From: Nageia nagi | Lineage: Eukaryota > Plantae > Pinophyta | Length of the DNA stretch: 64,000 nucleotides | NCBI GenBank assembly: GCA_050084985.1 | Contig: JBITNC010000001.1 | Span: 179,366,001-179,430,000 of the forward strand | Direction of reading: 5' to 3' | In this document: piece after piece, positions 5,431-60,944 of the stretch | How the letters are laid out: every line of letters starts with the position of its first letter | How positions within the stretch are numbered: the first letter of the stretch is position 1 | Position numbers and translations under genes: made by a program | The notes under the pieces: model-generated | What the model was told of the DNA's origin: nothing | Databases searched by the model: none | Seen by the model: only the letters and a program-made list of their open reading frames with translations

Positions 5431-6487
5431 ATACTTTAAATATAATACCAATCCTATCCAAAACCCTAGGATTTTTGGTACAACTATTTATACACATAAT
5501 ATCATTCATATGCTCAAATTCCCTATTGAATTAATTTCTTCTTTGTACATATATACTATTTGTTTATTTTCATTTGTATTCATTAATAAAAAAAAACTAA
5601 CCAAATCATATCAAATTATATAGAATTCATAACAGTGTCACTACATGGAGCTCTCTACTAGTAGGGGCATGGTGACCATCATGGTATGTATTCCTGATTT
5701 TTTATATTAAATTTCTTTTACTAGTAAATTTATATGCTTATGGTTTTTCTTCTTTGATTCTCTACCAAGGGTTATTTCCCTCCATAACATTTGAAAAAAA
5801 TACATTTTTAAAGAGTCTTTGATATGTTTATAAACCCTATTACAAATTTACCAGTTTGGGGCATTGTTCAAGAATGTTTAGGGTTTAGGGTAAATATACA
5901 ATATTCTATTTCTTCTACTATTTGTTGCAATCTATGGAACTATCTTTGCATCATACATCTTGTCAAACAATTCCTATAGCCTATTATACTCTTCCTCATT
6001 TTTTATAAATCTCCAACAAAAAAATGTTTGTTACCATAAGCCCCCAGACTCCTACATTCTTATTTATATACATAGCAAAACTCATTTTAATCAAGGCAAA
6101 TGATATTTAGTTTAGGTTTATACTAAAAGGTTGTAAATAAGGGTTTAAATGATGATCAAATGGTTGGATCATGTAGCATGGTTTCCCTCTACAATCTTTC
6201 TATGTATTTTGGATCCTTATTAATGTAAATACTAATTTCCTAGTGCATTTTTATCACTACAAATACTAGTTATTTTTAGTTAAAAATATGAATTTTGTAC
6301 ATTAGATTGAATATGTAGTTATTACTACAAAGTGGTTAGTTCCCTAAAGTAAAGTCTATAATCTCTATGTTATTCATAATTTTAGTCCACTTATAAAAAC
6401 TTTCTTGCTCTAGATTGTAAATTATTTGTAAGCTTGGACTCAAACTTATAAACCCTTCATATTTGTAACTTTTAACCTTTAAGTTAG

Positions 6488-6859
6488 TGTTAGGTCCCTA
6501 TACTACTCATGTAACCCATATATTGTTATTATGTGTCCCATAGAAGTCCACTATGGTTATTGTTATTCCATTACATTATTATTGTTATGTCGGCCAGACA
6601 TTATTATTATTATGTCGGCTAGTGTCCTTTCATTGTAGTGGCACCTGTTGGACTCCTATATATACTAAGGAGGTATTATCATTTGTATTGTCTATTATTG
6701 AGTAATTGATGTGATATAAAGGAGGTTGCCCCCTTAAAGTGGCTTATTACAAAGGAGGTTGCCCCTCAAAGTGGCTTATTATATATTTTATATCTTACTC
6801 AACACGTTGAGCTCTTTCTATCATGATTTTATTCTATTTTGGGAACTTTGTTCATAACA
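6488..6859 (+). repeat. 5' LTR
   Basis: TGTTAGG...CATAACA; about 19 mismatches versus 8908-9279 by eye. Confidence 0.97.
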
Positions 6860-6861
6860 TT

Positions 6862-6873
6862 TGGTATCAGAGC
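6862..6873 (+). promoter_or_regulatory. Primer binding site, tRNA-iMet
   Basis: TGGTATCAGAGC two bases after the LTR end. Confidence 0.95.
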
Positions 6874-8003
6874 AAATGATTCTAGGGTTTCACAGCTCAA
6901 AACTAGTCATTGTGGCATTTTCACTACTAATTTGGTTTTACAAAGATTTAGATTATTAAATTTTTTGGGTTTTTAGAAGACATACCAAAGAAGTTTTAGT
7001 TTAAATTTCATATCCTAACTCGCTAAATTTCTCAAGTTACACTTGGAGAAAGTTAAGGTTTGTGACTAGTATCAAAAGTAGGTTTGAAACAGGTGTTCTA
7101 GATAAAAAGGGTATATCTGAAGTTTTATAGCTCCAAACTAGGTGAAACCTATTTTATTGGTTATTTTATATACTGAAGTTTATCTGTTACAATTTTCAAG
7201 GTTTAAGAATAAATAGGTGACACAATGCACTTCGTACAATTTCATTCTTCAAAAAAATCCAAAAATCAGCACATTTTGGGAAAATTGCAGCCATTTCCTC
7301 TTGGACTATCAAAATTTGACAAAATATATGGCATTGAAAATAAGACATCTGAGGCTACCACAGGTAGAAATGTCAGACTCTAAAGGGATGAAATTTCATA
7401 TTTACATTAGTTGGAAGGTCAGATAATAGAATAGTCTCCAAATCATGGTTTAAAAAGGTACAATTTATTTATTTATTTTTTAAATTTGCATATATTTTGA
7501 TTGGAAGGTCTATTTGAGGTGATTCATAAGCTATTGGAAAGAGAAGAAAGAGGAGAGTCTTGTAGGTATATATGTGTTTTGGCATCTTTAAACATAGGAG
7601 CTATTGTTACTTTGCTAGCACTGCATCCCGAGGAATTATGGTCTCCTACAATGTACTCGCAGTATATCGCTTAGGCCACTGTTGGATTCTCTCATGTACC
7701 TTGAGTATATAGAGAGGCCATCATCATCATGCACATACATTGTATATAGAGAGGTCCTTTAGGATTCCCTCACATACCATGAGTATATTAGCAAGGGCCC
7801 TTTTCGAACGGTTGTGCATTAGATAGCACTAGCACAGATTTGAGCTCCCATGTACCTTGTGTATATAGGGATACCCCTAGAATCTTGAAACCAACCAAGT
7901 TAACCTTTTGACCATATGGGAAATTCCTACTCCATAGTAATACTTAGTCAAAATGCCATAAAAAAAAATTGCTACACCAACTAGACCTCTAAAGGGTTCA
8001 TCC

Positions 8004-8879
8004 ATGACTATAGCATAAAGTGAAGACATATTCTTCCGAATAGCCCAAGTGGAAGAATTGGTTAAAGGGTGTGTAAAAAAGGGTGATATGGGGGAATTAA
8101 AAAGGGATTTGACAAAAGAGTTGGTGACTAAAATGGATCAAAATATGGAAAAGATTTTTCAACTCATACAAAACCTAGAGGGAAATATTCCTAAAGATGT
8201 TGATATGACCCAGGGTTATCAGGAAAATAAGGATATTGTTCAAGGAGATAAACCCTTCATTAATAAGCCTAATTCAGGAGGATATGCTTCTACTAATGGA
8301 AGTAATCAAGCATGGTTCTCAAGGGGAATACAAATCCCCAAGATCAACATGAGGAAGTTTGATGTAAGGGACCCCATCACTTGGATATTTCAAATGGAGC
8401 ACTTTTTTGATCTACACCAAGTACCAACATCACAAAAAGTAACTATTGCATCCTTGTATCTAGAGCCTAAGTAGGTTGTATGGTACCAATGGCTTTGTGA
8501 AAGTAAAAATGGTTCTATTATATCTTGGTCCATTTTTATAGAGGAACTGATAGCCTACCATGAGGATGTTAATAATAATTCCTTCTTTACTCAATTGACA
8601 AATCTAAGGCAAAAAGGTTTAGTGATGGAGCACATTCAACAATTTCAAAAGTTGAGTCTTAAAGTGAATGACATACCAGATGATAGATTATTGGATCTCT
8701 TTATGGGAACCTTAAAGGATAACAATCAACATGAGGTGCATCTATTTGAACCAACATCCTTAGAGATGGCTTTTAGGATGGTAAGGAAGGTTGAAAGTAA
8801 AAATATGGCAATGGCTGAATATTCCACATGGGAAGATGAGAAATTTCTACAGAAGCATCCAGAACTACTAAAATGTTGA
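8004..8879 (+). pseudogene. gag: Gag fused in frame to the C-terminal tail of the integrase chromodomain; two premature stops
   Basis: One frame from ATG 8004, with stops TAA 8016 and TAG 8472. Gag motifs PKINMRKFDVRDPITWIFQMEHFFDLH, WYQW and LRQKG..FQKLS are followed by EYSTWEDEKFLQKHPEL. Confidence 0.9.
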
Positions 8880-8893
8880 GGACAACATTTTTT

Positions 8894-8907
8894 GAAGGAG
8901 AGGGGCA
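8894..8907 (+). promoter_or_regulatory. Polypurine tract
   Basis: GAAGGAGAGGGGCA directly before the 3' LTR. Confidence 0.9.
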
Positions 8908-9279
8908 TGTTAGGTCCCTATACTACTCATGTAACCCATATATTATTATTATGTGTTCCATAGAAGTCCATTATGGTTATTGTTATTCCCTTACATTATT
9001 ATTGTTATGTCGGCCAGACATTATTATTGTTATGTCGGCTAGTGTCCTTTCATTGTAGTGGCACCCCTTGGACTCCTATATATACTAAGGAGGTATTATC
9101 ATTTGCATTGTCTATTATTGAGTAATTGATGTGATATAAAGGAGGTTTCCCCCTCGAAGTGGCTTATTACAAAGGAGGTTGCCCCTCGAAGTGGCTTATT
9201 ATAGATTTTATCTCTTATTCAATGCGTTGAGCTCTTTCTATCATGATTTTATGCTATTTTGGGAACTTTATTCATAACA
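8908..9279 (+). repeat. 3' LTR
   Basis: Copy of 6488-6859, followed by TSD GTTAG. Confidence 0.97.
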
Positions 9280-10151
9280 GTTAGGGTTTATCTTTCACTT
9301 GTAGGAACTATCCTTCTCTAGAGATTAACAATTAGATGTAAAATAACAACTCCCACATTAATGATTTTTTAATAAATTCTTTATTTTGAAAAGTTAATCT
9401 ATTCAATATATGAAGAAACATAGTTTTAATGAGTCTTTGATGTATTTATAAACCACATTGCAAATTTATTAGCTTGGGATATTATTTGAGAATTTTGGGA
9501 AAGGTGAATTGAAATAGTTCAAATTATGCTACTATTTGTTGCATTCCATCTCCTATAAGAAAAATATTTACCCTTTTATGAACTTCAATCCAACTTCATT
9601 AATATCCTTACTCCATCATCATCCTAGTTTCCCACTTTAGCATAAATATTTGAAATAAGAACATAAGATAAAGCATATTTAGTCTCTAGAAAATAAAATA
9701 TTTCTTCCATAAGTCCCTCGATTCCTACATTCTTATGTGATGTAAAAGCACCAAGGATAAACATCCACACACACAATTTAGTTTTTTTTGTGCATATTAG
9801 CAATAACTTTCATAGCTTACTCAAGTGTTTCATTAGATGAAAGAGTTTAATTGCATCATTGTTGTATCCTTGAATTGCATATCCTCCACTCATTTCATTC
9901 TATGAATTTTTGTTTTCATCATGTCTAGTAGGTAACTCAAAACCATAACATATGATAGAAAAATGACTTCAATAAGTCTTTGATGTATTTATAAACCCTG
10001 TTACTAGTTCATTCTATCCACGATGGTATGTGCCATATACTACACATTTATTCTTTTATTATTTTATGTGGGTAGTACAAGTATACATTGATTTTATTTT
10101 ATGATTCACTAATGTATATACTGATACTTATAATGTTCATCACAAGCCCTT

Positions 10152-10722
10152 ATGAAAATCATCATACACCTTATTGAAAAGGAATTTAGGAGAATGCATT
10201 TGATACCTAATAATAGAGAGGTATACCTAGATTATAATGGAGGACAATGGATAGATACTAGGAAGGGTGATAAAATACAATATTTTTTCCTTTTGGGGAA
10301 GTGTGCATTGGTCAATGGAATTTGAAAGGATAATAGGTAGAGGTTAAATATGCATTGGAGTCAAGATCATGATGATGCAACACCAATTCCTCCTCTACCA
10401 AGAGGTAGGAGGCTAGATAATGGCATTCATAAGCCATCAATCTATAATGAAAATAAATATCTTATAGATAGGAAGGATATAAATAAGGTGCTTTGGATAT
10501 AATTTAATAGTAAATGTTATAGATTGTCTGGAGGTCTATATTTTTAGTATGATGTAAAGGGTAGGAATAATTTGTAATAAGTAGCCTTTGTTGAAATGCA
10601 AATAAAGTTGAAAGAATATAATTCTAAGGATAGGAAGAAAAGGAGAAAATTAGAACACTTAAAATAAGAGTTCACAAAGGGTCATGTTAACTATTTTACA
10701 CAAGGAAAGATAATAAAATAGT
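10152..10722 (+). pseudogene. Probable decayed coding exon of unknown function, possibly the N-terminal part of the TnpA-like gene
   Basis: About 190 codons in one frame (MKIIIHLIEKEFRRMHLIP...PIPPLPRGRRLDNG...RKKRRKLE) with only ~7 stops in very AT-rich DNA. No family recognised. Confidence 0.35.
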
Positions 10723-11493
10723 AGTTCACTAAGATTTTTTTAATCATTTTTTTCAAAAAAAGTATTGTTATTAGATATTTACATACAAATAGAAAATATT
10801 ATTGATTTTTAAAATCATAAATTATCCACATGATGTACAAGATTTTTCAAATGTAGAAGGATCTTTATATCAATTGATGAGTTAATTATTGGATTTTAAT
10901 TATATTTTACATTAAGTACAAATATATTATTTGATTATTAATTAAATTTATGACCTCCATTTTTTATAGTATGGAGTCTCAACCTCTATGAATCTCTAAT
11001 TTTATAAAGGCTCCTATTTTTCCACATCATCTATATGATTTATCAAATATTGAAGGCTCTTAATGTCATATTTATTTGGAGCCTATATGAAATGCTTGAT
11101 ATGATGATGATCAAGTGAATGTTTTCCTTTAATTGTAATTTATATTTAGAAAAAATAAATGTTTGATAGTGAATTCAGTTGGTGGCCTTAATTTTTGATA
11201 CTATGTAGTGACAATCTTTAGGAGTATTTAAACTTATAAAGGTTAAGTTTTTTCCCATTTTGTCTATGAGATTTTATAAATACATGAGAGTCTTTACATT
11301 AAACTGAAGTAGACCCAAATTTGACTACTATAGATGATGATGATCAAGTAATTAAATTTTATTTTATTATATTTGGTATTAAGTGGAGCTAACTTGTATA
11401 ATTATGAATTCACTTGATGGTTTGTAAAACATCATTATTTTACATGCAAGTAAGACATGATAATATTGGACCATTTCCTACCAGAAATGGTAA

Positions 11494-11718
11494 AAGGTAC
11501 ATCTACTTAACCCTCATGGTAATATAGTGGGGTATGGAAATGTGCATAATGATGATCTTACTAGCACATGCCATGGTACCACTATTGGAGAGGGGCATGT
11601 TTCCATAGAGGTGATTATATGTAATTTTAGTGGTTACAAGCTACCCATACCTAATGGGGATGCTACTACATTGGGAGAAGCTCTTTAGGGATTTATATTA
11701 TAGGACACTAAATTATTG
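11494..11718 (+). pseudogene. En/Spm (CACTA) TnpA/Tnp1-like C-terminal domain; related domains also occur in some MULEs
   Basis: KVHLLNPHGNIVGYGNVHNDDLTSTCHGTTIGEGHVSIEVIICNFSGYKLPIPNGDATTLGEAL*GFIL*D fits the VAxG..CHGxxLG..VxV..LPxP..LGDAxGxFIxW pattern. Confidence 0.75.
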
Positions 11719-12287
11719 TAACTTGATTACCAACCTTTAATTATAACCCAACATGTATAATCATTCTTACTTTTATATTAAATATTTATGTAATTAATAA
11801 TAATTTTATTTTATAGTAAGTATGTTTTTTAATTAACTATTTATTTCATTTCCTATGCATCCAAATGATGGATCATAAGGAAAGTAACATGTAAATGAAT
11901 TCAAAAATGTAAGAAATGAAGAGCAGCCAAATGATGCAGAATTTGTAGAGGCTAGTCATGATGATCAGGCAAAAATAAGAAGTGTATCAACTAGCATAGA
12001 GGTAATAGAATCAAGCCACAATCTAGTTAAAGTTGATTTAAATATTTTTAAAGTAATGTACATTAAATAATCATATTTTGTATGGTATAGTATAATATGA
12101 ATAAAGTAATGGAGTAGAAGGAGGATTTAAATGAAGAATAAGATCATGAAGAGGAATGGTTCTTATAATAACATATTGTAGATGTTGCAAATTGGACCCA
12201 ACATGATATGTAGTTGACACAAGATGCCATAAATAATATATAACATGTGTTCTTCCATATTTGTAGGGAATCATTTTTGTATTCTTA

Positions 12288-12835
12288 TACATTTTTGCAT
12301 ACATGTATATTAGAGCTTTCAACACCATAAAATTTGATTAAAAGTCATTTCCAACTAATTTTTAATGGATCTTCATACCTTCTTCTAGAGCTCCCATAAT
12401 TCCACATGCTAGAAGAATGATGCTAAAGGTTGTAGAGTCTAATTTTACATTTGCTAATTACATATAGCAAATGTATTGAGGACCTTTTCTAAAAACCTAT
12501 ATTATGCATATCATGTGATCATTACATTCCACAAAACTATGTCTACATCATGCATCTTGTTAAACAATTTACTTACCTTATATGTGCTTCCACATTTTTC
12601 ATACATGTATATTAGGGTATTCATAACCTCAACATTTGATGCAAAACTATTTCCAACTACTCTTTGATGGATTTCCATACCTTATTATAGAGCTCCCATA
12701 TTGGTACATTCCTAAAGAATGTTGGCAAAGGTTGTAGAGTTGGGTTTTACGGATGATAATTGCTTCCACATTTTGCATACATATATATCACAATATTCAC
12801 AACCTCAACATTTGATGCAAAATCATTTCCAACTA
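12288..12835 (-). pseudogene. PLS-class pentatricopeptide repeat (PPR) gene fragment
   Basis: Minus strand reads VKPNSTTFANIL*ECTNMGAL**GMEIHQRVVGNSFASNVEVMNTLIYMYEKCGSTYKVSKLFNKMHDVDIVLWNVMIT*YA*..VKLDSTTFSIILLACGIMGALEEGMKIH..ALIYMYAK, i.e. L-S-P-L-S motifs. Confidence 0.9.
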
Positions 12836-12971
12836 TTATTAACAACATTTAAGGGTAGCCTTGCTATAGCTATGAATTTCTACATAAATAACATATGGAA
12901 TTTTGATTTTTTTCAATAGGTTTATTTGAGTTTAAGTGCATCCTAATTTGCTTTGTTATATATAACAATAG

Positions 12972-13750
12972 GATAATGAGGAAGAACATGTAGTGGAAGA
13001 TGATGGTGAATGTAATGGTGTTTTTATGGCCACATGAGAAGAATTTTTTTTAACAAATTTAAATAATAAACTTGTTCTAAAATATCATATTATTTTACAT
13101 CGATATACCAACATGTTGGTGGAGGGGTACGTGCTTGTTGAATTTGTTGTGTACTCATTGCAAGTTGGTTAAATGTAAACCCTAGTTTTTTGCCTAACCA
13201 AAAAAAACTTGATGAAATAATACAACATGGATGTGAAGAATGGAATAGGCTAAATGAGAATACATACTTGAAAGAAAAATTTCCAAATGCATATTTTGAT
13301 TTGGATTGCATTTTTGAGTAGAAGTTGAATACTATGTTTATGGAATTTATGAATTACAAACAAGATTTACTTAAGCCATAGGGTGTGTTGGGAAAGTTTA
13401 AAATATTAGAGGAAAATTTTTTTAACAAAATGTGGGATGCCATATAAAATACTCCTAGAATTTACATAGTTACATGAGTTGATCAAATCTTCATTTTTAT
13501 GGTTGAAGAAAATGCATATTATATTTTTGATATTCGTAGTGAAATATTAGATGAGAATTATAAAAAAGGATATATTTTGAAATTTGATGAAGAGATGGAA
13601 GTGTGGGAGAAAGTAATTTTTTTTTTTAATGAGGATGAACACTATAATATAGTAAAAAAAGGGTAAGGAGTATTCCAAATATTAGTTTACTACATTTTTA
13701 ATAGATTCATGTATGCATTATTGGGTCATTAACTTTAATGCTAGAACATT
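12972..13750 (+). pseudogene. Domain homologous to the C-terminal (putative cysteine-protease) domain of plant NT-C2 proteins (At3g11760/At5g04860-like)
   Basis: One frame from 13091: YFTSIYQHVGGGVRAC*ICCVLIASWLNVNPSFLPNQKKLDEIIQHGCEEWNRLNENTYLKEKFPNAYFDLDCIFE*KL..FNKMWDAI*NTPRIYIVT*VDQIFIFMVEENAYYIFDIRSEILDENYKKGYILKFD. It is collinear with the recalled family consensus FASIDQ..AGESAC..IADW..FDSLIREGS.EWR.L..FPDKHFDL..FD.IWDEI..YIVSWNDHFF.L.VE..AYYIIDTLGERL.EGC.QAYILKFD. Confidence 0.8.
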
Positions 13751-15019
13751 AAGTAGCCTTAATATAATTAGGAATTTTACTATAGACTTCTCTTACAAAA
13801 AAGTGAAGAATGATGAAAATATGTAGGTATTTAACTTACTATTTGATGTTTTATGACTCTTGTTCTTCCTAATAACATTGATTTAGGCCTTATCCCATGA
13901 AAGGAATTGATGAAGTGAACATAAAGAAAGGTAAAAAAGGAGCATTGATATCAACCATGGGGATAACTCTTGCTATCAAAAAGGATGAAGGCAAGGGAAC
14001 AACTTGGTATAACTCCAAGGTTTCTCTTTGAGGGACAAAGCCTACAAGGACTTGTACATTGCTATCAAATAAGGAAAAAAAAGGGGAACAACTCATTTTA
14101 GGAGGTGATATTGAAATACAACATTTATAATATCTTCATAGGAATTTTTTCTACCTCAAACATTTCTACATATAATTTATTACAATATAAATTTACAACT
14201 CTTTATTGAAGTAAATGAACATTGTACACTAAATTTGTATAATGTAATTTAAGTTTATTTGATGTTAGTCATGTATTCCATTATGTTCATATAAAAATGC
14301 AATTTGTTGCTTGCATATAGATGAATTTCATTAAGGTAAAGGAGTGTTCTATTACATTTTTGTGTGACCTCAATAGGATATTTATAATGTTTGAATTTTT
14401 GAATTCAAAAAATTATTTGTGGGAATTTTACAAGTATAATTTATTCTAGTTTGTGAGATATATCTTCTCCATAGATGTATTAGTGATAACTCTAATTTAT
14501 TTGGCTCTACTTTAGTAACCTATCAACCTTCAATCTGCAAATTCTCAATAAAAATACAATTTAAAAATACTAATATGTAACTTAAAAATATATTCTATGA
14601 TAACACATGAATCATAACATATGACATAAAATAAAATGACAAATTACTTCACAATGTTATGCTTGAAATATTCTCTAACAAAATTATGATATAAGTCTCC
14701 TACTCTCTCAATGTTGGGACCCCTATTTCATTCTTCTGTAGCTTATTTTGTAGCAATAATCAACACTATTTTAGTAGAATATTGTTATAACAAAGTTAAT
14801 AATAAAATTTATTATTTAACAATATCATAAACAAACTCTAATTTTATCTATGTTGACTAAGAAAATAGGGAGAGTAATCCCCTTTGTTTAGGATTATGAA
14901 TATGTTTTGTAACTCAACTTTGATATTAATAGGTGTATAATTCAATTTGATAACTATTTGAATATAGTATGTATATTTAAATTTTTAGATGTCACTTGTC
15001 CTTTTTCAACCATTCACCA

Positions 15020-15235
15020 AGTGGATGTTGATTAAGATGCAGACTAGGATGTTGACTAGGATGCCACCTAATGTGCTCACTAAGATGCCACCTAGGATAC
15101 TGACTAGGAAACCACCTAGGATGTTGACTAGGATGCCACCTAAGATGATAACTAGGATGCCATCTAGGATTTTGACTAGGACACCATCTAGGATTATGAC
15201 TAGGATGCCACTTAAGATGTTGACTAAGATGCCTA
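15020..15235 (+). repeat. Tandem array of alternating 12-bp units (GTTGACTAGGAT / GCCACCTAGGAT), 24-bp period
   Basis: Directly visible; it produces the spurious repetitive ORF 14989-15249. Confidence 0.9.
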
Positions 15236-16844
15236 TGTGGAATGATTAATATGGATACCTATGTAGCATGGTGATGTGATTACCTATGTAGGAATTGACC
15301 ATACATGCCATGTTATTATAGTGGGTCCCACTAAGTAATTTTCATTTAAGAATATTTAATATTTTTTAAAATCTTTATAAGACCATAAATCATAAACTAT
15401 AGCACCATTTCTTCACCATTTCAATTGTTAGAAAGAGGATGAAGAGCTCTTTAGTATATATGGTAATAAAATTAAGAAAATGATTAACTTGAAGCTTCCT
15501 CTTTTATTGAATTTGAAAACCTATGTTTAACAGTATCAAAGAATAGTCTTGAGCTAATGAATGAGTGTTTTATGATCTTGCACTTGATAGTTGACACTTA
15601 TGGTAAGAATCATGATTAACTTAATGTATCCTAAGTGAAAGGTACCAATTTTGGATGTGTACATTTTGATCCTTTTTTGAATTATCCAATGACATAGGTA
15701 GTGGATTATTCAAAAAATATTATTATATCACATGAATATTTTATCATTTGGTATTAAATGAGGCTTTCATGTATCTTCATATTAGGGTATCATCAAACTT
15801 AATTATCATAGATATAATTAAGTATGATTCAATTTTCTTTCAATTGATAAATTTTATACTATAGTAATCATGTATAATGCATCCTAAAGTTGTACTCATG
15901 TCTATGTACTTATGTCATTATTTGAGATAGGTACGTGATGATACTTTGGTTCATCTACATATGCCATTTTGAGGTAGATACATGATAGGAAGCCTTTTTA
16001 GGTATACATGTTCAAGTTTGAATGTTTTCTATTATCTTGCCAAATGGGATTTCATGATGATATTTTATAAGAAATCAAGCAAATCATATCATTTATGATG
16101 TAATGAATTTAACTTGATTAACCTCTTAGATGATTTATCTTGGGATATCAATGCTAAGAGAAAAATACAAGAGGTTTTCCTTTGGGTCATGGGAAATTGT
16201 AGTTGCCATAATCATGACCAAATATAAGCTTCTAGATTTTATAATCAAAGCATTCTGAAAACAAGTTTGTTGTATACCTTAATTGGTACTCAGGCTTGCC
16301 TACATATGCCATTATCTTGACATTTAGTCTAGGGAGTTATATGATGAGGAGTCCTTTCAATATGGATAAATTGTTTGATAATCATACTAATTACCCCAAA
16401 AGAGTGGGTTTCAAGATTATTTTTTGTAAAAGTTATTGGAATTATATTTGTTTATGATTAGGGCTTTTTAAATTAAACAAGAATTGATAGCAAGTCAATA
16501 GTATTCTCCTTAAAATGTTGAGGTGACAAGAGATAATCCAAAATGGGTGTGGATAGGATAGAAAATGATAAATAAAAATGGATATTTGATAAATATTAAG
16601 ATTGTATGAGGATTTTATTATTGATCCTTTATTATTGTTAATAGTATCTTGCAAAGATCATTGCAAAAAATGTCTACTCAAGATTAAATATTATTAGGTT
16701 GAGCAACACCTAAATAAAAATTCAAATGTATTCCCACTCAATTATTGAAGCAAGGAGAAAACACTAAGATTTTTATGAATATATCAAAAATGAATAAAAA
16801 ACCTAGTAATGTTTGATAAGGATACATAGTACATGTTTCATTAC

Positions 16845-18812
16845 AATCATGATTTCAATAATATCCTAAAGAGAGGTAAAACCCTAGGCCACCACTTATC
16901 CTTATACCTTCTTTGTAGTTGAATATATTTTACCCTCTAATTGGTATATGTTGCATGTTTACTTCTCATTTAACCTTGATAAAACCTATCTAACCTGATT
17001 CATACTCTTGTATGGTGAACATTGCATAATATACTCTGGTGGAAGTTTAATACACAATGGTTTGGGTGAGCAACCATGGTGGTTTGATAGTTCTATTAGG
17101 ATGTAGTACATTATGATGGGTACATATGGAAATTTGTAATAGTCATTTACATTTTGTTTTTTACACTCTATCATTTAATTATATTGATGTTATTTTATTA
17201 TTTTAATATAAATGATTGTTAGAGCAATTATGATATTTTATGAATGCTAAGGTGAAATATGTTTACATGTTGTAATGCTCTTTCATGCTATATATTTCAT
17301 TTGTGATGTTCATTACTATTTGTAGTGTGCATCATGTATTACAAACATGTTGCTTATTTACAATTGTAGTGCTATTACTATATATCATTTATTGTAAGCA
17401 ATGTTGACATGTCCTTAATATGGTTAGTATGAACAATGTTGAAAATGTGTTCCCTACTAAGATGATAAATATCATTATTATTATTTAATTTGAGGATAAG
17501 GGGAAATGGTTAAGGGTTGGTCAAATTTGGTTACTATTTTTAGCTTATTCGTTTTTGTTAAATCAAATTTATATATATGTACATCATTTTTGTATAAGGG
17601 GACTTAAATGTGTATATACTTAGGAGATAATTTTTATCAATGGCAAGTTATGAATTGTATGGTCAAATAGGACCTTGGCTCTGTATGTTTGGTTAAACTA
17701 TATTCATACTTAAATTTATTTATGTATTTCTAATTAATTATGCTCTATGTAAACTTTGTTTTGTATAAATAGATTTTGATATTATATTACTACTCGATCG
17801 GTAAATATTTTAGTCAGTTTAATCTCTTTTTATGTTTGGCATTATACTAAGTTAATATTTAATTGATTCAACTATTGCTTTAATTTCATTGAATAGGGAG
17901 ATAGTTTTCATGATAACTTGGTTGGGTAAAACTAATGAGCAATGAATCATTATATACTTAAAATAGTTATGGATATATTATGTTCAATAAGTTATTATTG
18001 TTCAAAATAATCATCCTATCTCTGGTTTGCTCATATTAAGGGGTCCATTCATGTTTAGAACTTGGGATATCAGGATTATTCTTCTAATTTAATATAATAG
18101 GAGGATTGTATCTATAATTCCTAGTATAATGATGAGTTATGATTTAATTATGGGCTCATAACAATCCCTAAGAGATCATTTAGGCTCTAAGAAATAATTT
18201 ATGTTCTATTCTACTCAATTCATAGTGTTGTAGTATCTTTAGTTGGCCAAGTATGTAACAAAACTCCTTAGTATTCTAGAATGAAAATAGGGATGGTTCC
18301 CTTGGGTTAGGCCATAACTATGAGTTCAACTCAGCTTGAAATATTTGTAGTTATTCCTTGGATATTTGTTATTTTTAGAGTTCCTTTTAATGAGAATTAA
18401 GTTTATGAGTGTGGGACAAGCCCAAACTCATAAACCATTAAATCAATATTGTATATTTATCATCTAAGTAAGTATATCTAGACCATAGGTGTTAAGAGAT
18501 ATTAATTCCTATTTTTGGTAGGCTAATACCTTTATTTCATTAGCATTCTATAGAGGAAAGAAGACTATCCATAGATAATATCCCAAGTGGAAACATAGAG
18601 TATAAACCTTAGGGGCATGCTAGGATGTTAAGTTCTATTCTCTTACATCCATCACTAAGACCTAAATTTTACATATAATAATGGTCATTTTGTAAGGAAA
18701 TGAATCATACTAGTATCCTTATCTATAGCATAAGGTAAATAATCATAGATACTTAGTAATGATCTGAAGTGAAATAAAATATTCAAAAAAAATTAAATTT
18801 TGGTTATTTACA
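16845..18812 (+). repeat. 5' LTR, 3' part only
   Basis: Collinear with 24965-27007; ends GGTTATTTACA. Confidence 0.85.
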
Positions 18813-18888
18813 TTCACATCATAGCCTTGATTAGGCCTAATGGTGTTATGGTGTCTAAAAACCTTTACCATGTTGTATTGCAAAGGAC

Positions 18889-21800
18889 ATGCCTCCTCAA
18901 CTTTGTAATAGATAAAATATACCTAAGAATGATCAATACGATGGACTAAGAGGTGGCCCCTATGGCGATCTTTATGGTGGGAATTAAGGTGATCCTAAAG
19001 GTATTTTTAATACTAGGAGGAATTAAACTCATAATATCAATAATAATCAAAGGATGAACAACATTTTAATGATGAGAAAGATTAGAATAATGATTAAGAC
19101 CAAAACTAGAGTCCAAAAAATATTGTCATTATAGCCATGAATGCTACTATGGGTGAGATGAGACAATAGTTATAGCAACAACATCAAGATTTAGAGTAAT
19201 TATGAAGAGCCCAACAAGGTGATGATAAAGTTATCATTACTCCAATACTTGTTTTGGAAATAAGGGCACATGTACCAACAAATTTGGCCAAGGATCTAAA
19301 ACATGTATGTATTACCAAATTCAATGGTAATGTACACCATGAAGAAGGGTGACTACACGAATTGGAATCTTACTTTATGATAAGAGGTTGTGGAGATTTG
19401 TTTTGCACTACTTATGCTAGTATTCACCTAGCTAAAGAAACTTTAGACTAGTGGATAACTTACCTTCAAGATACTAACCAATAGTTCCTAGATATTAACT
19501 AGGTGGATTTCAAGAAACTCTTTAGGGGAATATTTTTGAACAATCAATTCATGTTAGAAAGAAGAACTAAGTATTTAAGGTTGATACAAGGTAACTTGTT
19601 AGTGGAATCATACCATCAAAAATTTATATAGCTACTAAAATATATCCCTAGAACTAAAGCATGCCAATTTAACAAAACTCAAAAATTCTTGTTTAGTTTA
19701 GATGCCTAGATCAACACTGATGTAAATCAATTTGATCTATATGCTTTCCAAAAAGCTTATGAAAAAGCTAGAAGAGAGATTATTAGTTTGGAAACTTGTA
19801 GAGAGGCCTTTGATTAGTTTACAAACTCCCAAAAGAAGAATCAAGGAGGACATAATCATGGGTAGCCAAATAAAGGGTAAAATCATTGGTGGGAAAGTAA
19901 GAAGAAACATGAGCAATATTATAAATAGAAGAACACACCCTCTCAGAAAACTCCCAATAGTAAAAACTATTCTCTAAAAATGATATAGGAAAGGATGCAA
20001 GTAATAAACCAAGGTAAGACTCTCCTGCAAGGAACCAAAATAGACATGTTCCAAAGTGGGATCATCACCCCAAAGGTGGATGTTACCATTGTGGAGGACC
20101 CTATTATGCTAGGGAATGTAATAGAAGGGATGGTTATCCCTTTGGAAATAGAAAAAATCATAATATTTATGCAACTATGAATCAATAAGCTTTATATAAT
20201 AAATATAATATTATCATGTTTCAAGGTATGATTTGTAACCAAAAATTTTCCATTTTGATTAATTGTAGTGCCATTGAAATTTTTATTTCTTCTTATACCT
20301 TGGATAAACTAAGCCCTAAGGTTAAATATCTAAATAAGGTAAGGAAGTTAGAATTTGCATCAAGTTAAATTAGAAATTTAAACTAATATTTACCAAATGT
20401 AAAGGTGTTCATCCTTGAGTTTGTATTTAAAATACCTTTGTATGTGGTACCATCTCTAGTGTATGAGATCGTTTTGGTTCTTGATTGGCTATATCAATCT
20501 AAATTTCAAATAAATTTTCTAGAACATTGGGTTCATATTATCAATAATGAGGAGAAAAGGGTTATCATGTATAACACAATAAGTACCTTTGAACTTAAAA
20601 CCCTTTCCTCCATTCAGTAAAAGAGACTATGTAACAAAAAATGGTAGTTATTTGCTATCAGAATTGAGGAACAAAATGAAGAAATTTCTAAGTCTAAAAT
20701 GATATTAAGAAAATACCCTATTCTCAAAGAATATCAAGATGTGTTTCTTTATAAACTACCAAGAATGCCTCTAGTAAGGGAATTTGACTTTTCTATTGAG
20801 TTAATCCCTTGAATAGAACCTATTTCAAGAGTCCCTTATAGAATGAACACCATTAAATTGCAATAGCTTAAGATAGAGTTGTAAGAATTAATGGATAAAG
20901 AACTCATTAAACACAATGTGTCTCCTTGGGATGTACCATCCCAATATGTTTTATCAAAAATAAATATGGTACTCTAAGGTTATGCATATACTACCATACA
21001 TTAAACAAACTGATCATTAAAAAAAAGTATCTCTTACTCAGGATTGATGATCCTTTTTATTAGCTACGTAATGCCAACATATTTAGAAATATTGACCTAA
21101 GGTATAGATATCATAATTTGAGAATAAAGGATAAATACACTTTAAAAATAACTTTGAAGAATAGGTATGTTCATTATGAATTCATTTTGCTACCCTTTGG
21201 TCTTACTAATGCACCAATAGCCTTTATGAATATCATGAATGGTGTGTTTATAAAGTATTTGGATTAGTTTGTGCTTTTGTTTCTTAATGGTATTCTAATA
21301 TATTTTAAAATTATGGAAGATCATAATCAACATATAAAGATAAACTTTTAGGAACTAATAGAAAATTAGTTATATGGCAAATTGCCTAAGCGTGAATTCT
21401 ACACTTTTAGTGTATACTATCTTGGTCACATCATTTCTAAGTAGGGGTTAGCTGTAGATCTTAAGAAGATTAAAGTAATGAAAGAATGGTTGGCCCAAAC
21501 TAATGTGAGTTACATTTTAAATTTTATAGGACTAACCAATTATTATAAAAAAAAATTAAATATTTTTGGAAAATTGCTTACCCCATAGGCTAGTTATAAA
21601 AGAAGGACTATATGTTTGTTTGGTCAAAAAAATATTAGTAAACTTTTAAACTTCCAAAAGATAATTTAACCACTTACCCTAACCTTAAACTTCTTGATAT
21701 ATATAAGTAATTATCAATTTGTATATATGTCATTGGTTAAGGAAGAGGAGGCATGTTAATGCAAGGTGGTCATGTTGTCACCTATGAATCTAGAAAACTC

Positions 21801-23517
21801 AAGGACCATGAGATGAAACATGGTACTCGTGATTTAGGACTTGCAGCCATTGTTCATGCTTTTAAAATGTGGAGACATTACCTCATAGGTAGTTCAATGG
21901 TATTCAAGTATGATAATCATGATCTAAAATATTTATTTACCCAACCTACTCTTAATGCATACTAAAGGAGATGGATGGAATTCATAGGCAAGTATGATCT
22001 CAAGAATTAATACATTAAGGTTAGAGAAAATGAGGTGGAAGATATCTTAAGCAAAAAGAGGCATATATTATTTGATATTTCCAATTACAAATTTGATATA
22101 AAATGTAGGGTGCAATATTATCAATCAAGAGATAAATTCTACATTGAGAAAAGGAGAAGAATAGGGAATGGTACTCTAAAAAGTTTTAGAATAAGAGAAG
22201 ATAGCCTACTTTTTTTTAGCTACATAATAGTAATTACAGATGAAGGAAATTTGAGGAAATATATTCTATATAAATCCTATGTCACTCCATTCTCTACACA
22301 TCCTAGGGTAAATAAGATGAGAGAAAACCTTAAATAGTAATATTTTTTTATAGGGGAATAAAGAGGGATATAGTAGTTTATGTGACCAAATGCATTGACT
22401 ATCAAAAATTTAAGATTGAGCATAGAAATATAGATATTCTATTACACCCCCTTGCCATTCTTGAACAAAAATGGTATTCCATTAGTATGGAATTCCTTGT
22501 TGGCCTTCCAATAATAAGATACCAACATGATTCAATCTTTGTAATGATTGATAGGCTGACCAAAGTAGCTCATTTCATTCTTGGAAATACCACATACAAT
22601 GCATACATTATTTTTGGTAGGTTCATGAAAGAAATATTTAGATTACATAATTTTCTTAAAAGTATTATTTCTAATAGGGATAGTAAATTTACATATGAAT
22701 TTTGGAAGTTTTTGAATAGTGAGGTAGAAAATAAATTTCATTTTATTTCTTCATACCACCTAAAATCAGATGGAAAAACTAAAAGAGTAAATTAAATTTT
22801 GGAAGATATGCTCTAGATGTATTATAACCACCAATAAAAAAATGGGAGGACTACTTGAATTTGGTGTAGTTTGCATATAATAATAAATATCAAAAATCTT
22901 TAAACATGTCACCATTTGAAGCCTTGTATGGTTGAAAATGTAGAACTCCAGTATCTTAGGATAGACTAGAAGAGAGATCTACTTTTGGAAATAAAATATT
23001 ACAAAATATGGAATCTTAGCTTAAGATTATTCATGGAAATATTAAGGAGGCATTAGATAGATGAAAATGTTTAGCTAACCTCCATATAACCCATAAATAA
23101 TTTACTATTGTGAATAAAGTTTTCCTCAAAGTTAAATCTAGAAAAAGTTATATTAAATCATCCAAGTTGTCAGCTCATTATGTACTCCCCCTTACAATTC
23201 TAGAAACATTTAATCTTATAGCTTACCATATGAATTTTCCAACCAATTTTTCTAAATTGCATAATGTATTTAGTGTATCTTTGCTTAAAATGCACATGCC
23301 TTATCCCTCACATGTTTGGGATGTGGATAAATTGCAAATGATAAATCCTTTGACTATGGAGGTAAAACTAGTAATAATTCTGGAAACCTATACTAAGAAG
23401 ATCAAAAATAAAAATATGGACCAATGTAGAGTTTAATGGGATAAATATTATGAGAATAATTCCATGTAGGAAGACTTAAATGTGATGTAAAACTAATTTC
23501 TTGATTTATTTGTTTGA
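18889..23517 (+). pseudogene. pol: gag-pol polyprotein, heavily disrupted
   Basis: RT (LRLCI..LNKL..RIDD, HYEF..LPFGLTNAP), RNase H (VVTYESRKLKDHE..LAAIVHAFKMWRHYL), integrase (WYSISMEFLVGLP..IDRLTKVAHF..SNRDSKFT) and chromodomain remnant. Confidence 0.95.
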
Positions 23518-23566
23518 TAACTAGCCTAAAAACACATTAACTATGTTTAATCTTAGGAAGGGTGAA

Positions 23567-26500
23567 TGTGATGGATTACTTTGCTAAGGTTGCAACTCTA
23601 TGAGATGTTTTGTTTGTATTCATTTATGAATTTGCATTTTGGGTATTATGGTGCTATGATAGGGTTCTGTATGTGCATTAAGGTCTTATCTAAGTTCTCA
23701 TACTTGCATGATTTTATGCATAATAAAATGGTAGGGATAGGTGAATTTTGTTAATGCATGCTCATGTTAGTCTCTCTTGGGATCTAAAATAATGAGTATG
23801 GGTCAAGCCCAAACTCCTAATCCATTAATATCTCAATTTTCTATTATCTTCCCCCTAGATTTTATCATTTTAGAATGATTTTTTATAGGTAAGTAACCTA
23901 ATCTATATAGTTAAAACTTAACCTAAGATTAGTAAGCTAATCTAATAAGGTTAGTGGATTAGTTTGATTTTAATCTAATTTAAACTAAACTAACCATATA
24001 TTAGTATTGTTATGTTAGTAAATTTAATAAACTAAACCCAAATCTAATGTTAATACCTAAACACCTACCCACTCGACCACTTTGCTCTAATACCTAAACA
24101 TTCTATTATTTTTCCTCTAACCATAACCTAAAAACTAAACAAAACATTATAAACTAAACCTAAAACCTAGAACATTCTAAAAACATTTCCTTCTTATACT
24201 AATCATTCTATGTCATGAGATGAGCATGGGTAAAGTTGGGATTTTACAACTGGTATTATCGATGGTATACTCACATGAACTAGTTATTTATTCATTTATG
24301 ACTAAAGATGGTTTAGTAATGGTTATTTACACATCCTTTGAGCTTAAATTTGAGTGTTTAATTAGTTGATTATATTGCAAAAATCATTTGAGGTAACCTT
24401 TGAAACTATAGCTTTAACATCAAATCTTTGTAAATCATTTTCATGGAAGCTAGTAATGGAGGTATGTTTTGAGGAGGTGTTAATAAACTTTAAATTTGGA
24501 AGGCATGTAAACAAAGTGTTGTTAACCATAACTAGGGGTTGAGCCAAGGGAATGTGGGAGATTACTTTACATTAGTACATAAGATTGGAACATCCAAAAA
24601 TAGAGTACTTCAATCTATTTTCTCATTACTAAGGAATAAAGTATCAATTTATAATTATCATAAACCTCATAGGGTTATCACCTTTGCTTACTTGATTGAA
24701 ATTGATAAGTTGATATTGGGTATGGAAAAATAAGGTTCAAGGTATTTTCTTTGGATGGTTTTATATGTTTTTCTTACATGTTGTTGAGTTATGGTTATGG
24801 GTTCAAAATTGGAGTCTAATGTTTAAATGTTTACTAATTTCTAAAGATGTTTTCAAGTGTTATTATAGGTAATACTATTGCATTTTCTATGGAGGATTCT
24901 ATTAGGCATTGCATTGAAGTCTTATTTCATGTTCTACATTTAGAAGGAGATGAGTGGCTCACCTTTACATTGCATGATTTCAATGGTAGCCTAAAAAGGT
25001 AAAATTATAGACCACCACTTATACCTATACATTATTTGTAGTTGTAGACACTTGATCCTATCATAGTTATATGTTGCATATTGACCTCTTATTTAACCTT
25101 GTTAAAACCTATCTAACTTAATTCATACTCTTGCATAATGAATGCTGCATAATATACTCTAGTTGAAGTTTAATCAACCATGGTTTGGGTGAGTAGCCAT
25201 GGTGGTTTGACAGTTTGATTAGAATGCATTACATTATGATGGCTACATGTGGTAATTTGTAATAGTCATTTACATTTCATTGTTTACACTCTATTATTTA
25301 ATTATATTGATATTATTTTGTTATTTTAATATAAAAAATTGTTAGAGTAGTTATGATATTTTATGAACACTGAGATAAAATCTTTTTACATATTGTAATA
25401 CTCTCACATGGTGTATATTGTAATTATAATGTTCATTATTGTTTGTAGTGTGCATCATGTATTATGAACATGCTACTTAATTACATTTATAGTGTTGTTG
25501 TTGTAATGTTTATTATTATTTATCATTTATTGTAAGCAATGTTGACATGTCCTTAATATGCTTAGTGTGAATAGTTTTCTTAAGCAATATTTAATTGCTT
25601 AAGAAAAGGTGTCCCCTATTGAGATGGTAAATCTCATCCTTATTTTTTAATTTGAGGTACATGTAGGAACTGAAGGTTCAATGGTTAAGGATTGGCCATA
25701 ATTGGTTGTTGTTTTTAGCTTAATTTTTTTTATTGTATCAAATTTATATATGTACATATTTGTATAAAGGGATTTAAATGTGTACATCCTAAGGAGATAA
25801 TTTTGTATCAATGGCAAGTTATAAAGTTTATGGTCAAACAAGACCTTGGCTCTATATGTTTGGTTAAAATATTATTCAAACTTAACTAGATTTGTGTATT
25901 TTTGATTAATTTTACTCTATGGTGAAATAGATTATGACATTATAATACTACTCAATTAGTAAATATTGTAATTAGTTTAATCACCTTTTATTTTTATTAT
26001 TATATTGAGTTAGTGTTTACTTATTCAACTATTTCTTTCATTCAATTGTAGGGAGATGATTGTTGTGGTAGCTTGGTTGGCTAAAACTAACGAGAAATGA
26101 ATTGTTATATACTTAAAATAGCTATGGATATGTTATGTTTAATAAGTTATTACTATTAACAACAATCATCCTATCTTTTTTGTGTTCATATTAAGGGTCC
26201 TTTCCTATATAGAACTTGGGATATCAAGATTGTTTTTTTTATTTAATCTAATAGAAGGATGGTATCTATGATTCCTAGTATAGTGATGAGTTGTGGTTTA
26301 ATTCTAGGCTTGTTGCAATCCCTAAGAGATTATTTGGGCTCTATGTAAGAACTTATATTCTATTTTTCTTAGTTCATAATGTTGTAGTATCTTTAGTTGG
26401 CTAATTATCTGACAAAAAACAAGTTTTCTAGAATGAAAATAGGTTTGGTTCCCTTGGATAAGTCCATAGTTGTGAGTTCAATTTGGCCTTAAATAGTTGT

Positions 26501-27007
26501 AGTTATTTCTTGCATATATGTTATTTTTAGAGTTCCTTTTAATGGGAATTAGGTTTATGAGTTTGGAGCAAGCTCAAACTCATAAGCCATTAAATTAGTA
26601 TTAAATATTTACCCTCTAAGTAAGTATAGCTAGACCATAGGTGTTAAGAGGTCTTGATTTGTATGTTTGGTAGGCTAATACCTTTGTGCTATTAGGATTC
26701 TATAAAGGAAAGACGATTATACATAGGTAATCTCTTAGGTGGAAATAGGGAGTCTTCACTTGATGGGCATGCATGATAATGAGTTGGGAAAGGATTTTAA
26801 GTTCCATTATCTTCCATTGATCATTGAGACCTAATGTATGGATCTTGCAATGGTCATTTTATGGAGAAATAAATCATATCAATACTTGTGTCTATATCAT
26901 AGGGTAAATAATCCTAGATACTCAATAATGCTAAAAACTTAGAAAATATTAAAGAATTTTTTTTAAATTCCTCTTTTTAGTAGTAGCGAGTGGTTTGGTT
27001 CTTTACA
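23567..27007 (+). repeat. 3' LTR (~3.4 kb)
   Basis: TGTGATGG after the PPT, ending GGTTCTTTACA. Confidence 0.8.
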
Positions 27008-33588: not shown

Positions 33589-33666
<78 letters not shown>

Positions 33667-34914
33667 ACAAAAAGAATGTCATAATATATATATCAATAGA
33701 AAATATACTTATTAAACATGAAATATTTTAACAATACATATTGCATCTTAGAATTAAAATCTAAGTTTAATAAAAACATAAAATAACTATTTTTTTGCAA
33801 ATTTAATAGATACAACTTTTTTTTTTACTTCTCTTGGCTTGAAAATAGAATTTTTTAGAGAAACATACTATGAAAACTCTACATAAGCCATTCTTTTACA
33901 TTCTTCTAAGTTCTTTACTAAGATCAAAGACTTCTAGAAACCCCCATTTCATTTCAAACTCATGAATTTTATTAATATGCAATTATGGAATTAACTAGAA
34001 CCTAGAATTTATTTTTAAACTAAATGCTCATCCTTGGGTTACAACCCAAATTATTTTTCCAAGAAGATAAATATCATACATGCATATAAATTTAGAAATG
34101 CAACTTTTGTAAATAAAACCCATAATGCATTTTCTAAATTATGTTTGGTTTATATTCCATATTTATGTCTCAAAGGTATTCATAAAACCAACATTCATTT
34201 CCAATTTAAAAATCTAAACCATTATTGAAAATCACTAATACACAGAACCATTTTTGTTTTCAAATTCTTACAATAATTAAATTTCAATTCTTAAAAAAAA
34301 AATATAGCATTCATAGAGAGCACCTATAATTTGCAAGAAATTCCTTATGAAGTTGTCTCACCTAATAAATGCAAGCCAAATCTAAATCTAGCAAGTATGC
34401 AAGCCCAAAAGTCTCCCAAATATCTATACAAAATAGCATTAAGAAGGGAAATATTTTGTAGTTGCAAAAAATGCCAAGAGTGTCATTTCAAAAACACCTT
34501 CTAAAAACTCATGGAAGCACAAAACTACAACAACTAGTTCACTCTAGTTTTTAAGTAGTTTATCTAGAAACTTATGGGCTAAGGCATCATTTTCATGTCC
34601 AATTCAAATACAATCAAATGATTCCATAAATATTTGGGATCATTTTTTATGCATTCATACTTCCCTTATGGGATGAGGCATCATTGTCATGTCCAATTTA
34701 CATCCAATTAAGGGAAGCACTCACTTTAGCACATATTCATGTAAATACATCAATTTCAAGCAATATCAACTTTATAATAATATATATAATAATCATTTAT
34801 AGTAATGAAATAATGCATAAACAAATGATCTCATTAACATATTTCAAACACAAACATGCTTATCACAAAATTATTCTACTTGCATAAAATAGTATAAAGG
34901 GGAGGGTCACCACA
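33055..34914 (-). repeat. 3' (shared) LTR, ~1.9 kb; boundary at 33055 inferred
   Basis: Start is fixed by the PPT. End GGATGTGCA is inferred from the adjacent PBS-like motif. Confidence 0.65.
33591..33666. repeat. Compound microsatellite (CA)27(TA)11
   Basis: Direct read. Confidence 0.98.
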
Positions 34915-55123: not shown

Positions 55124-55620
55124 TGTTGGAAATTATAATGCATTATTGTGTAATATTTTTCTTTAATGTAAATTCATTTAGTGCTTGAAGTATTTTTAGA
55201 TACATAAAAGAATTAAAGGAATAAATATAGAAAGGGGAATAAATATAGAAATATCTTTAACCTTACCCTTAGGTTAAAGGGAGGTTAAAGAGTGGGTTTT
55301 ATCTTATAAATAGAGTGGTAACTCCTCTCATTCTATATGATTGAATCATGGTAATATTTTTCTTGTAGGAGTACTCTTGTAAGAGCTTTGTAGAAGAATT
55401 CTTGTAGTAGAATTATTGAGAATTTGTATGATAGTTATCTTATGAGAAGTAAGAGAAGAAATGGTTCAAAGTGGATGTACTCTCAAAAGTTGGAGGAACC
55501 ACTATACATGGTGTGTTATCTTTTGTGTGATTATTTTTTTCTTTGCTAGATGGATAAATGTTAAATTTATTAGAGAATATTTGAAGAGATATTGAATTAT
55601 GGAATCCTTCAATTCCATCA
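55124..55620 (+). repeat. 5' LTR
   Basis: Aligns to 60468-60944. Confidence 0.92.
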
Positions 55621-60467: not shown

Positions 60468-60944
60468 TGTTGAAAATTATAATGCATTATTGTGTAATAT
60501 TTCTATTTAATCTAAATTTACTTAATGTTTGAAGTATCTTTAGATACCTTAAAGTATTAAGAAAATAAATATAGAAATATCTTTAACCTTACATTTGGGT
60601 TAAAGGAAGGTTAAAGAATGGGTTTCATCTTATAAATATAGTGCTACCCTCTCTCATTCTATATAGATGAAACATGGTAATGGTTATCTTGTAGGAATGC
60701 TCTTATAGGAGCTTTGTAGAAGAATTCTTATAGTAGTTTTTTTAAAAATTTGTAGGAGTTATTTTATAATAAGCAATAGAAGAGATGGTTTAAAGTGGAT
60801 GTACTCCCAAGAGTTGGAGGAAACACTATAAATGGTGTATTATCTTTTATGTGATTATTTTTTGCTTTTCTAGATAGATGAATGTTAGATTTGTTGGATA
60901 AGCTTCAAGGAGATCTTGGTTTATGGAATCCTTAAATTCCATCA
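60468..60944 (+). repeat. 3' LTR
   Basis: Follows the PPT; aligns to 55124-55620. Confidence 0.92.

Follow-up and report, generated by a model that had tools for sequence, protein, structure and literature searches.

The At2g25460-type NT-C2 proteins of plants constitute the DUC family, a group of K63-specific deubiquitinases first described in December 2025 (bioRxiv 10.64898/2025.12.04.692294). The enzymes adopt a papain fold with a catalytic triad of Cys318, His441, and Asp456 and a gatekeeper Phe442; the structure of a host DUC has been solved, its closest fold is the VTD/tegument class, and the preprint makes no mention of transposon-borne members (bioRxiv 10.64898/2025.12.04.692294). The present analysis concerns a stretch of 64,000 nucleotides of Nageia nagi (GenBank assembly GCA_050084985.1, contig JBITNC010000001.1, positions 179,366,001 to 179,430,000 of the forward strand), referred to as the window, and within it a decayed gene on the plus strand that ends in a DUC-type exon. 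With a probability of roughly 0.7, the region is what is left, after decay and probably truncation, of one copy of an accessory gene that belongs to a multi-copy, DNA-transposon-like element and carries a DUC catalytic exon captured from the host. The accessory gene consists of four parts, namely an N-terminal domain, a small exon of a family labelled PF26133, acidic linker exons, and the large DUC exon. A transposon-borne DUC would be a class of protease new to those riding on transposons.

Among plant DNA transposons, one captured protease of ubiquitin-like modifiers is known, ULP1. The ULP1 (C48) domain is found in KI-MULEs (Kaonashi, VANC-ULP1) and in CACTA and MULE elements of grapevine, melon, and rice, where likewise a host protease of ubiquitin-like modifiers has been captured into an accessory gene. 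In eudicot MULEs, ULP1 dates from an early capture and has been retained ever since; its role is still unclear. These systems differ from the present locus in that C48 proteases act on SUMO, whereas the domain found here is of the DUC type, whose host enzymes cleave K63 chains of ubiquitin. In animal hosts, VTD and OTU domains are carried by another class of transposon, the Helitrons and Helentrons (PMC9741609), in contrast with the plant setting of the DUC exon. The VTD domains of these elements are ordered Cys-Asp-x-His with no aromatic gatekeeper, whereas DUC enzymes are ordered Cys-His-Asp with a gatekeeper (bioRxiv 10.64898/2025.12.04.692294).

The DUC-type catalytic-domain exon occupies positions 12972–13663 on the plus strand. 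Its core, 13091–13615, translates in a single frame with five stops. Eleven tblastn queries (four short fragments of the transposon type and, from plant assemblies, seven longer proteins of the DUC type) were run against the window, and every one of them gave a single significant place, within 13073–13639. Six full DUC domains align over 173–189 residues (13091–13621) at 29–33% identity with E-values of 2e-24 to 4e-20. A profile constructed from 48 host proteins matches the open pieces 13142–13318 (E 6e-18) and 13478–13663 (E 1e-6) and no other stop-to-stop piece on either strand of the window. The N-terminal part of the profile, which covers the C2-like, lipid-binding NT-C2 domain, is unmatched by any piece of the window. 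By this search, no C2 domain is present in the window.

A phmmer search of 1.84 billion representatives with a 59-residue piece of the exon retrieved 53 matches. With the exception of the short fragments at the top and one PPR-repeat protein, these are DUC-type host proteins, and those with a named source come from Cryptomeria, Canna, Diphasiastrum, Pteridium, and the alga Mesotaenium. Pfam NT-C2 is carried by 20 of the 52 matches that were scanned, the PPR-repeat protein being excluded from the scan. Three of the host DUC matches have unusual architectures that may be annotation fusions: P0045 combines NT-C2 and the deubiquitinase domain with a methyl-CpG-binding domain, P0051 has a U-box and ARM repeats attached to the N-terminal part of the deubiquitinase domain, and P0046 from Rhodiola has a basic N-terminus and no C2 domain. 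A sequence search of the PDB with the two DUC pieces returned no DUC entry among its matches, a homologue search with the piece around the catalytic His position gave zero candidates, and viral contigs scanned for DUC fragments contained none.

The extent of the exon is defined by a relative and by splice-like signals. The fragment P0058 extends the homology upstream of the core ("GVFIATWEEF...KSHIYF") by about 40 codons, which lie in another frame, begin at about 12972, and are preceded by an AG behind a pyrimidine-rich stretch. A GTAAGG donor at 13664 lies directly 3' of the exon. The whole exon thus delimited is about 230 codons long and contains six in-frame stops (13035–37, which replaces a Trp codon, 13139–41, 13319–21, 13379–81, 13445–47, and 13475–77) and one frameshift, a 1-nt deletion near 13090.

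The catalytic domain, which spans roughly 300 residues in the DUC family, is homologous to that of AtDUC1-3, with which it has the motif order S-I-D-Q ... A-C ... W-N-D-H-F ... D-T-L-G in common (Lachmayer et al., bioRxiv 10.64898/2025.12.04.692294). The Gln of the first motif is encoded at 13109, and the catalytic Cys (13136–38) and Asp (13529–31) are kept. The His position reads Gln (13484–86) and the position of the gatekeeper Phe reads Ile (13487–89), so that this copy has no complete triad with an aromatic gatekeeper. The Asp lies 15 residues past the His position, the same spacing as in AtDUC1-3; the VTD-type Asp-x-His motif does not occur in the alignment, which has the arrangement of the DUC enzymes. 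The AtDUC1-3 proteins differ further in carrying NT-C2, in place of which the window copy has transposon-type exons upstream. The copy is non-functional because it contains six stops and a frameshift and because Gln and Ile replace the catalytic His and the gatekeeper Phe. Judged by sequence, it belongs to the DUC family by homology of the catalytic domain only, having no C2 domain and, in this copy, an incomplete triad.

A sequence-only reading had drawn attention to this locus by describing a single-frame block at 13091–13615 with five stops, alignable motif by motif to the C-terminal domain of plant NT-C2 proteins, devoid of a C2 domain, and dead, with Gln 13109, a Cys at 13136, and Gln in place of the catalytic His. 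Translation reproduces each of these residues and all five stops, to which a sixth stop and the frameshift are now added; the alignment to host DUC/NT-C2 proteins is far beyond chance (E 2e-24, with NT-C2 in 20 of 52 matches), and the missing C2 domain agrees with the failure of the N-terminal profile across the window. That reading had also guessed from the pattern S-I-x-Q...G-x-x-A-C that the domain resembles VTD/tegument-type deubiquitinases, which was correct in kind, the closest fold to DUC being of that class (bioRxiv 10.64898/2025.12.04.692294).

The copy is not alone. Six more short fragments without C2 (P0001–P0004, P0057, and P0058) are present in other assemblies as reading frames on small Logan contigs; P0001–P0004 are the best four phmmer matches, and the remaining two came from a profile search. 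The fragments are 43–70% identical to each other and 45–54% identical to the window copy, and the Pfam scan detected NT-C2 in none of them. They have derived features in common, in which IDQQ-VGG replaces the IDQRSE-AAGES of the hosts and the motifs LIQHGCDEWN and EEKLN...LLKPKG appear. A maximum-likelihood tree that included 49 DUC-type proteins places the window piece and five fragments in one clade with a Shimodaira–Hasegawa-like approximate likelihood ratio test (SH-aLRT) support of 99; P0058 was left out of the tree for having too few filled columns. The clade is placed within seed-plant DUCs on a very long stem of 2.3 changes per site, which, together with the Gln and Ile replacements and the stops, sets the window copy apart from AtDUC1-3. 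The exact sister of the clade is unreliable, as long branches meet there. The Rhodiola protein P0046 was considered as a donor lineage and rejected, its adjacency to the clade being probably due to long-branch attraction. On this tree, the window copy is part of a multi-copy, monophyletic lineage without C2. The catalytic Cys is kept in six of the seven copies, and one of them, P0057, is open over 147 codons. The copy at 12972–13663 is a dead member of this C2-less, probably transposon-borne DUC lineage.

A model of the 147-residue P0057, computed with the alignment of its relatives, has a predicted local distance difference test (pLDDT) score of 69. A Foldseek search with this model returned nothing significant, although 8ADD and 2J7Q appeared among its highest-ranked entries.

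The evidence for a mobile element comes from the sequence upstream of the DUC exon. A repeated unit corresponding to the 5' part of the accessory gene, introns included, extends over 10012–12235 on the plus strand. A scan of metagenome contigs with the family of the upstream exon revealed three loci, L001–L003, the first two of which carry the same sequence. The window is 72–78% identical to L001/L002 over 10012–10846, 11037–11111, 11333–11898, and 12071–12235, and about 69% identical to L003. Homology runs through non-coding DNA and the flanks change between loci, L002 having another repeat on its left and a copia reverse transcriptase on its right. Between the window and L002, exons are 81% and introns 76–79% identical, and third codon positions are just slightly more variable; the near-equal identity of exons and introns therefore indicates neutral decay of the copies after insertion. 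Taken together, these comparisons describe a unit that behaves as a repeated mobile one, unlike a conserved host gene.

The unit contains three recognizable parts. Block 1 (10134–10722, plus strand) consists of exon-like pieces of the N-terminal domain with in-frame stops; its peptide motifs recur at L002 790–981 and L003 9162–9398, and a Pfam search of it gave no match. The conserved PF26133-labelled exon (11467–11753, plus strand) has stops at 11686–88 and 11701–03 and a GT donor at about 11754, its end being set by alignment. Besides the copies at L001–L003, it has three homologues that are 73–83% identical, of which the two longer ones (P0054 and P0056) bear a precomputed PF26133 label. 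The third part is an acidic linker (11858–12235, plus strand), recognized by translation and alignment, with a first piece at 11888–12067 that is deleted in L002 and partly kept in L003, and a second piece, rich in Glu and Asp at about 12090–12160, that is 78% identical to L002 2102–2269. The upstream exon and P0054 gave no usable match in the ESM Atlas, and an AlphaFold model of the upstream exon family has a pLDDT of 37.

The sequence-only reading had included a block at 10152–10722 in the gene and had called the block at 11494–11718 "TnpA/Tnp1-like". The former is indeed part of the unit, being common to L002 and L003. Of the latter claim, the conserved exon stands, with its three relatives and the copies at L001–L003, and the assignment to a TnpA-type domain is not confirmed by Pfam: Transposase_23 (PF03017) matched neither the window exon piece nor P0054–P0056 at E up to 1, nor the intact reading frames of L002 and L003 at E up to 0.1. 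By eye, the exon resembles Transposase_23 in its pattern of short beta-rich motifs and in its position before a protease. The wider proposal of a transposon-like gene context is borne out, as the DUC exon lies on the same strand as the repeated, transposon-like gene.

The outside loci show additional features. At L002, the PF26133-type exon is tandemly duplicated (1280–1627 and 1827–2027), the left flank (1–316) matches a repeat that occurs in the window at 55124–55470 and 60468–60794 on the minus strand, and the copia reverse transcriptase that cuts the right side is on the minus strand. At L003, a Plant Mobile Domain (PF10536, E 1.5e-15) is encoded at 4–261, 10 kb upstream of the accessory-gene exons and on the same strand.

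Two sets of pseudogene pieces, unmentioned in the sequence-only reading, accompany the unit. Antisense fragments of a PLS-type PPR gene, about 2.5 repeat units, separate the linker from the DUC exon (12278–12850, minus strand), where they are recognized by translation, by the direct repeats D7 and D8 spaced 302 nt, and by a Pfam PPR match (E 0.0013) that is under the curated cut-off. An antisense fragment of a PPR E motif lies just upstream of the repeated unit (9627–9809, minus strand; weak Pfam E_motif, E 0.0056). The latter has the motifs YVLISNIYA and SWIEV in common with L003 and is 75% identical at the DNA level to L003 8367–8480, which is upstream of block 1 there as well. As the E-motif piece is common to L003, at least part of the PPR material seems to travel with the unit. 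Further PLS-type PPR fragments are antisense at 9335–10009 and 5710–6063, and a second set resembling E-motif and PPR sequence at 5782–6063, about 3.6 kb upstream, parallels that at 9400–9736.

Several observations weigh against an accessory gene with a DUC exon that served the element. No outside locus directly shows the unit linked to the DUC exon, since L001–L003 all end, or are cut by copia, short of the expected position of that exon; L003 stops 400 nt past the upstream exon. The window contains no inverted repeats of at least 40 nt, and neither terminal inverted repeats nor a target-site duplication were found. Inspection by eye of the long open pieces of the window and of shorter ones nearby, without a profile scan, revealed no transposase frame. 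The His column is reached by two of the seven transposon-type sequences and neither has His, the window copy having Gln and P0057 having Tyr, so that no readable transposon-type sequence carries His at the catalytic column; with the hosts as outgroup, His is the most parsimonious ancestral state. A moderate sign of past selection does exist among the copies, whose mean pairwise identity is 0.64 at columns with host conservation of at least 80% vs 0.41 at variable columns (Spearman 0.34, p 9e-4); it is weakened by the small number of sequences and by the fitting of the alignment to the host profile, a procedure that gives conserved columns an advantage. Finally, the element holds plainly non-functional captured host fragments, of which the DUC exon could be one more.

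The PPR fragments are of no conceivable use to the element, which lends some weight to the reading of the DUC exon as passive cargo. It would then be a transduplicated host fragment in a Pack-type element, comparable with the PPR pieces and never used. Besides the antisense PPR fragments inside or beside the unit, one of them common to L003, the loss of the catalytic His in both copies that reach the column is consistent with this explanation, as is the condition of the seven known copies, every one of them a fragment or a pseudogene; relaxed constraint could account for the long stem branch. Against this, the DUC exon lies in sense, has AG and GT boundaries, and follows the element's own exons. 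The better preservation of host-conserved columns suggests that constraint acted on the DUC fold for some of the time over which the lineage spread, and the Cys retained in six of seven copies and the 147 open codons of P0057 point in the same direction. The ULP1 domain of MULEs provides a precedent for retained captures. On balance, passive carriage is unlikely.

Alternatively, a fragment of a transposon gene (10012–12235) could have landed in or near a PPR pseudogene, with an unrelated, decayed DUC pseudogene 0.7 kb farther on. The DNA homology to L002 ends at 12235 and PPR sequence comes next; the minus-strand PPR sequence runs from 12850 to 12278 and continues with the E motif at 9809–9627, which places 10012–12235 between the two and fits a PPR gene split by an insertion. 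Both parts are together at no outside locus. The placement of the DUC exon in the transposon-type clade is nevertheless not that of a recent host pseudogene, and its strand and order are those expected of an accessory gene. In addition, and as indirect evidence of linkage elsewhere, P0056 (an upstream exon) and P0003 (a DUC exon) are each recorded from a single Logan contig, in both cases exactly 2726 nt long, a length that would fit the 1.4-kb spacing in the window and a coincidence with a probability of about 1% over 18 pairs by our own estimate. A chance neighbourhood is accordingly regarded as quite improbable. Least credible of all is a decayed, C2-less DUC paralogue of the host that gained a new N-terminus and spread by segmental duplication without any transposon: annotated C2-less DUC proteins such as P0046 do exist, and transposon ends and a transposase were not found in the window, but between copies the introns are no less conserved than the exons, flanks change from locus to locus, every copy seen is broken, and the surroundings are almost wholly retrotransposon debris.

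Under the favoured reading, that of a decayed accessory gene with a captured DUC exon, a history can be proposed. The DUC exon would have been captured once, at the DNA level, from a host gene whose membrane-targeting C2 domain was left behind, and would then have been spliced onto the element's own modules; some selection may have maintained it for as long as the element stayed active. The protein of active elements would deubiquitinate targets picked out by the transposon-specific N-terminal modules, instead of acting at the plasma membrane. Such a role would parallel that of ULP1 in KI-MULE/VANC genes and mirror, in a plant, the VTD and OTU proteases of animal Helitrons. The stronger proposal, that DUC is an integral, selected module in the accessory protein encoded by DNA transposons of an active family in large, AT-rich seed-plant genomes, retargeted from the plasma membrane and serving the element as ULP1 is thought to serve KI-MULE/VANDAL elements, is tentative and somewhat doubtful.

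If it were true, sister folds, DUC and VTD, would have been placed on transposons in plants and in animals independently of each other, or else transposons would have helped to spread the fold. A second, unrelated, and biochemically defined class of protease beside ULP1 would generalize the idea that transposons gain from deconjugating ubiquitin-type marks. For annotation, a DUC match without C2 in a large plant genome is likely to represent transposon debris and is not to be counted as a member of the host family. The window copy itself contributes one dead example and the pairing of the domains.

A further block at 13889–14130, which the sequence-only reading had placed last in the gene, is a putative last exon (13887–14130, plus strand) and a candidate for the C-terminal helix of DUC. 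By eye, KKG...L..DIEIQHL-stop resembles the host pattern KKG...LH.RLQIEFHYT; the C-terminal region of the host profile did not match the block, and its assignment to DUC gained no support from that comparison. A Pfam search of the window pieces of blocks 1–4 found nothing. Two pairs of CACTA-type ends (10107/14485 and 6255/17327) are within chance expectation, and the copy looks isolated and truncated. About 0.9 kb downstream of the gene, at 15024–15238, lies a minisatellite whose unit of 12/24 nt is ACTAGGATGCCACCTA-like (seven matches vs 0.2 expected); it is found nowhere else in the window and could be a subterminal repeat of an element.

The window as a whole is AT-rich, with a G+C content of 27–33%, and consists almost entirely of decayed retrotransposon sequence, including several pairs of long terminal repeats (LTRs) and remnants of gag, integrase, and reverse transcriptase. 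Two of these neighbours are more complete. A short LTR-bounded element at 6488–9207 has direct repeats of at least 300 nt that are 96% identical and 2420 nt apart, contains gag-like frames at 8019–8876 and no polymerase, and is much younger than its surroundings. An LTR retrotransposon at 16874–26949 has LTRs of about 1.9 kb, 72–90% identical and about 8.15 kb apart, with integrase-like frames at 22011–22792. Farther downstream, at about 33600–33700, the window harbors a compound (CA)n(TA)n microsatellite.

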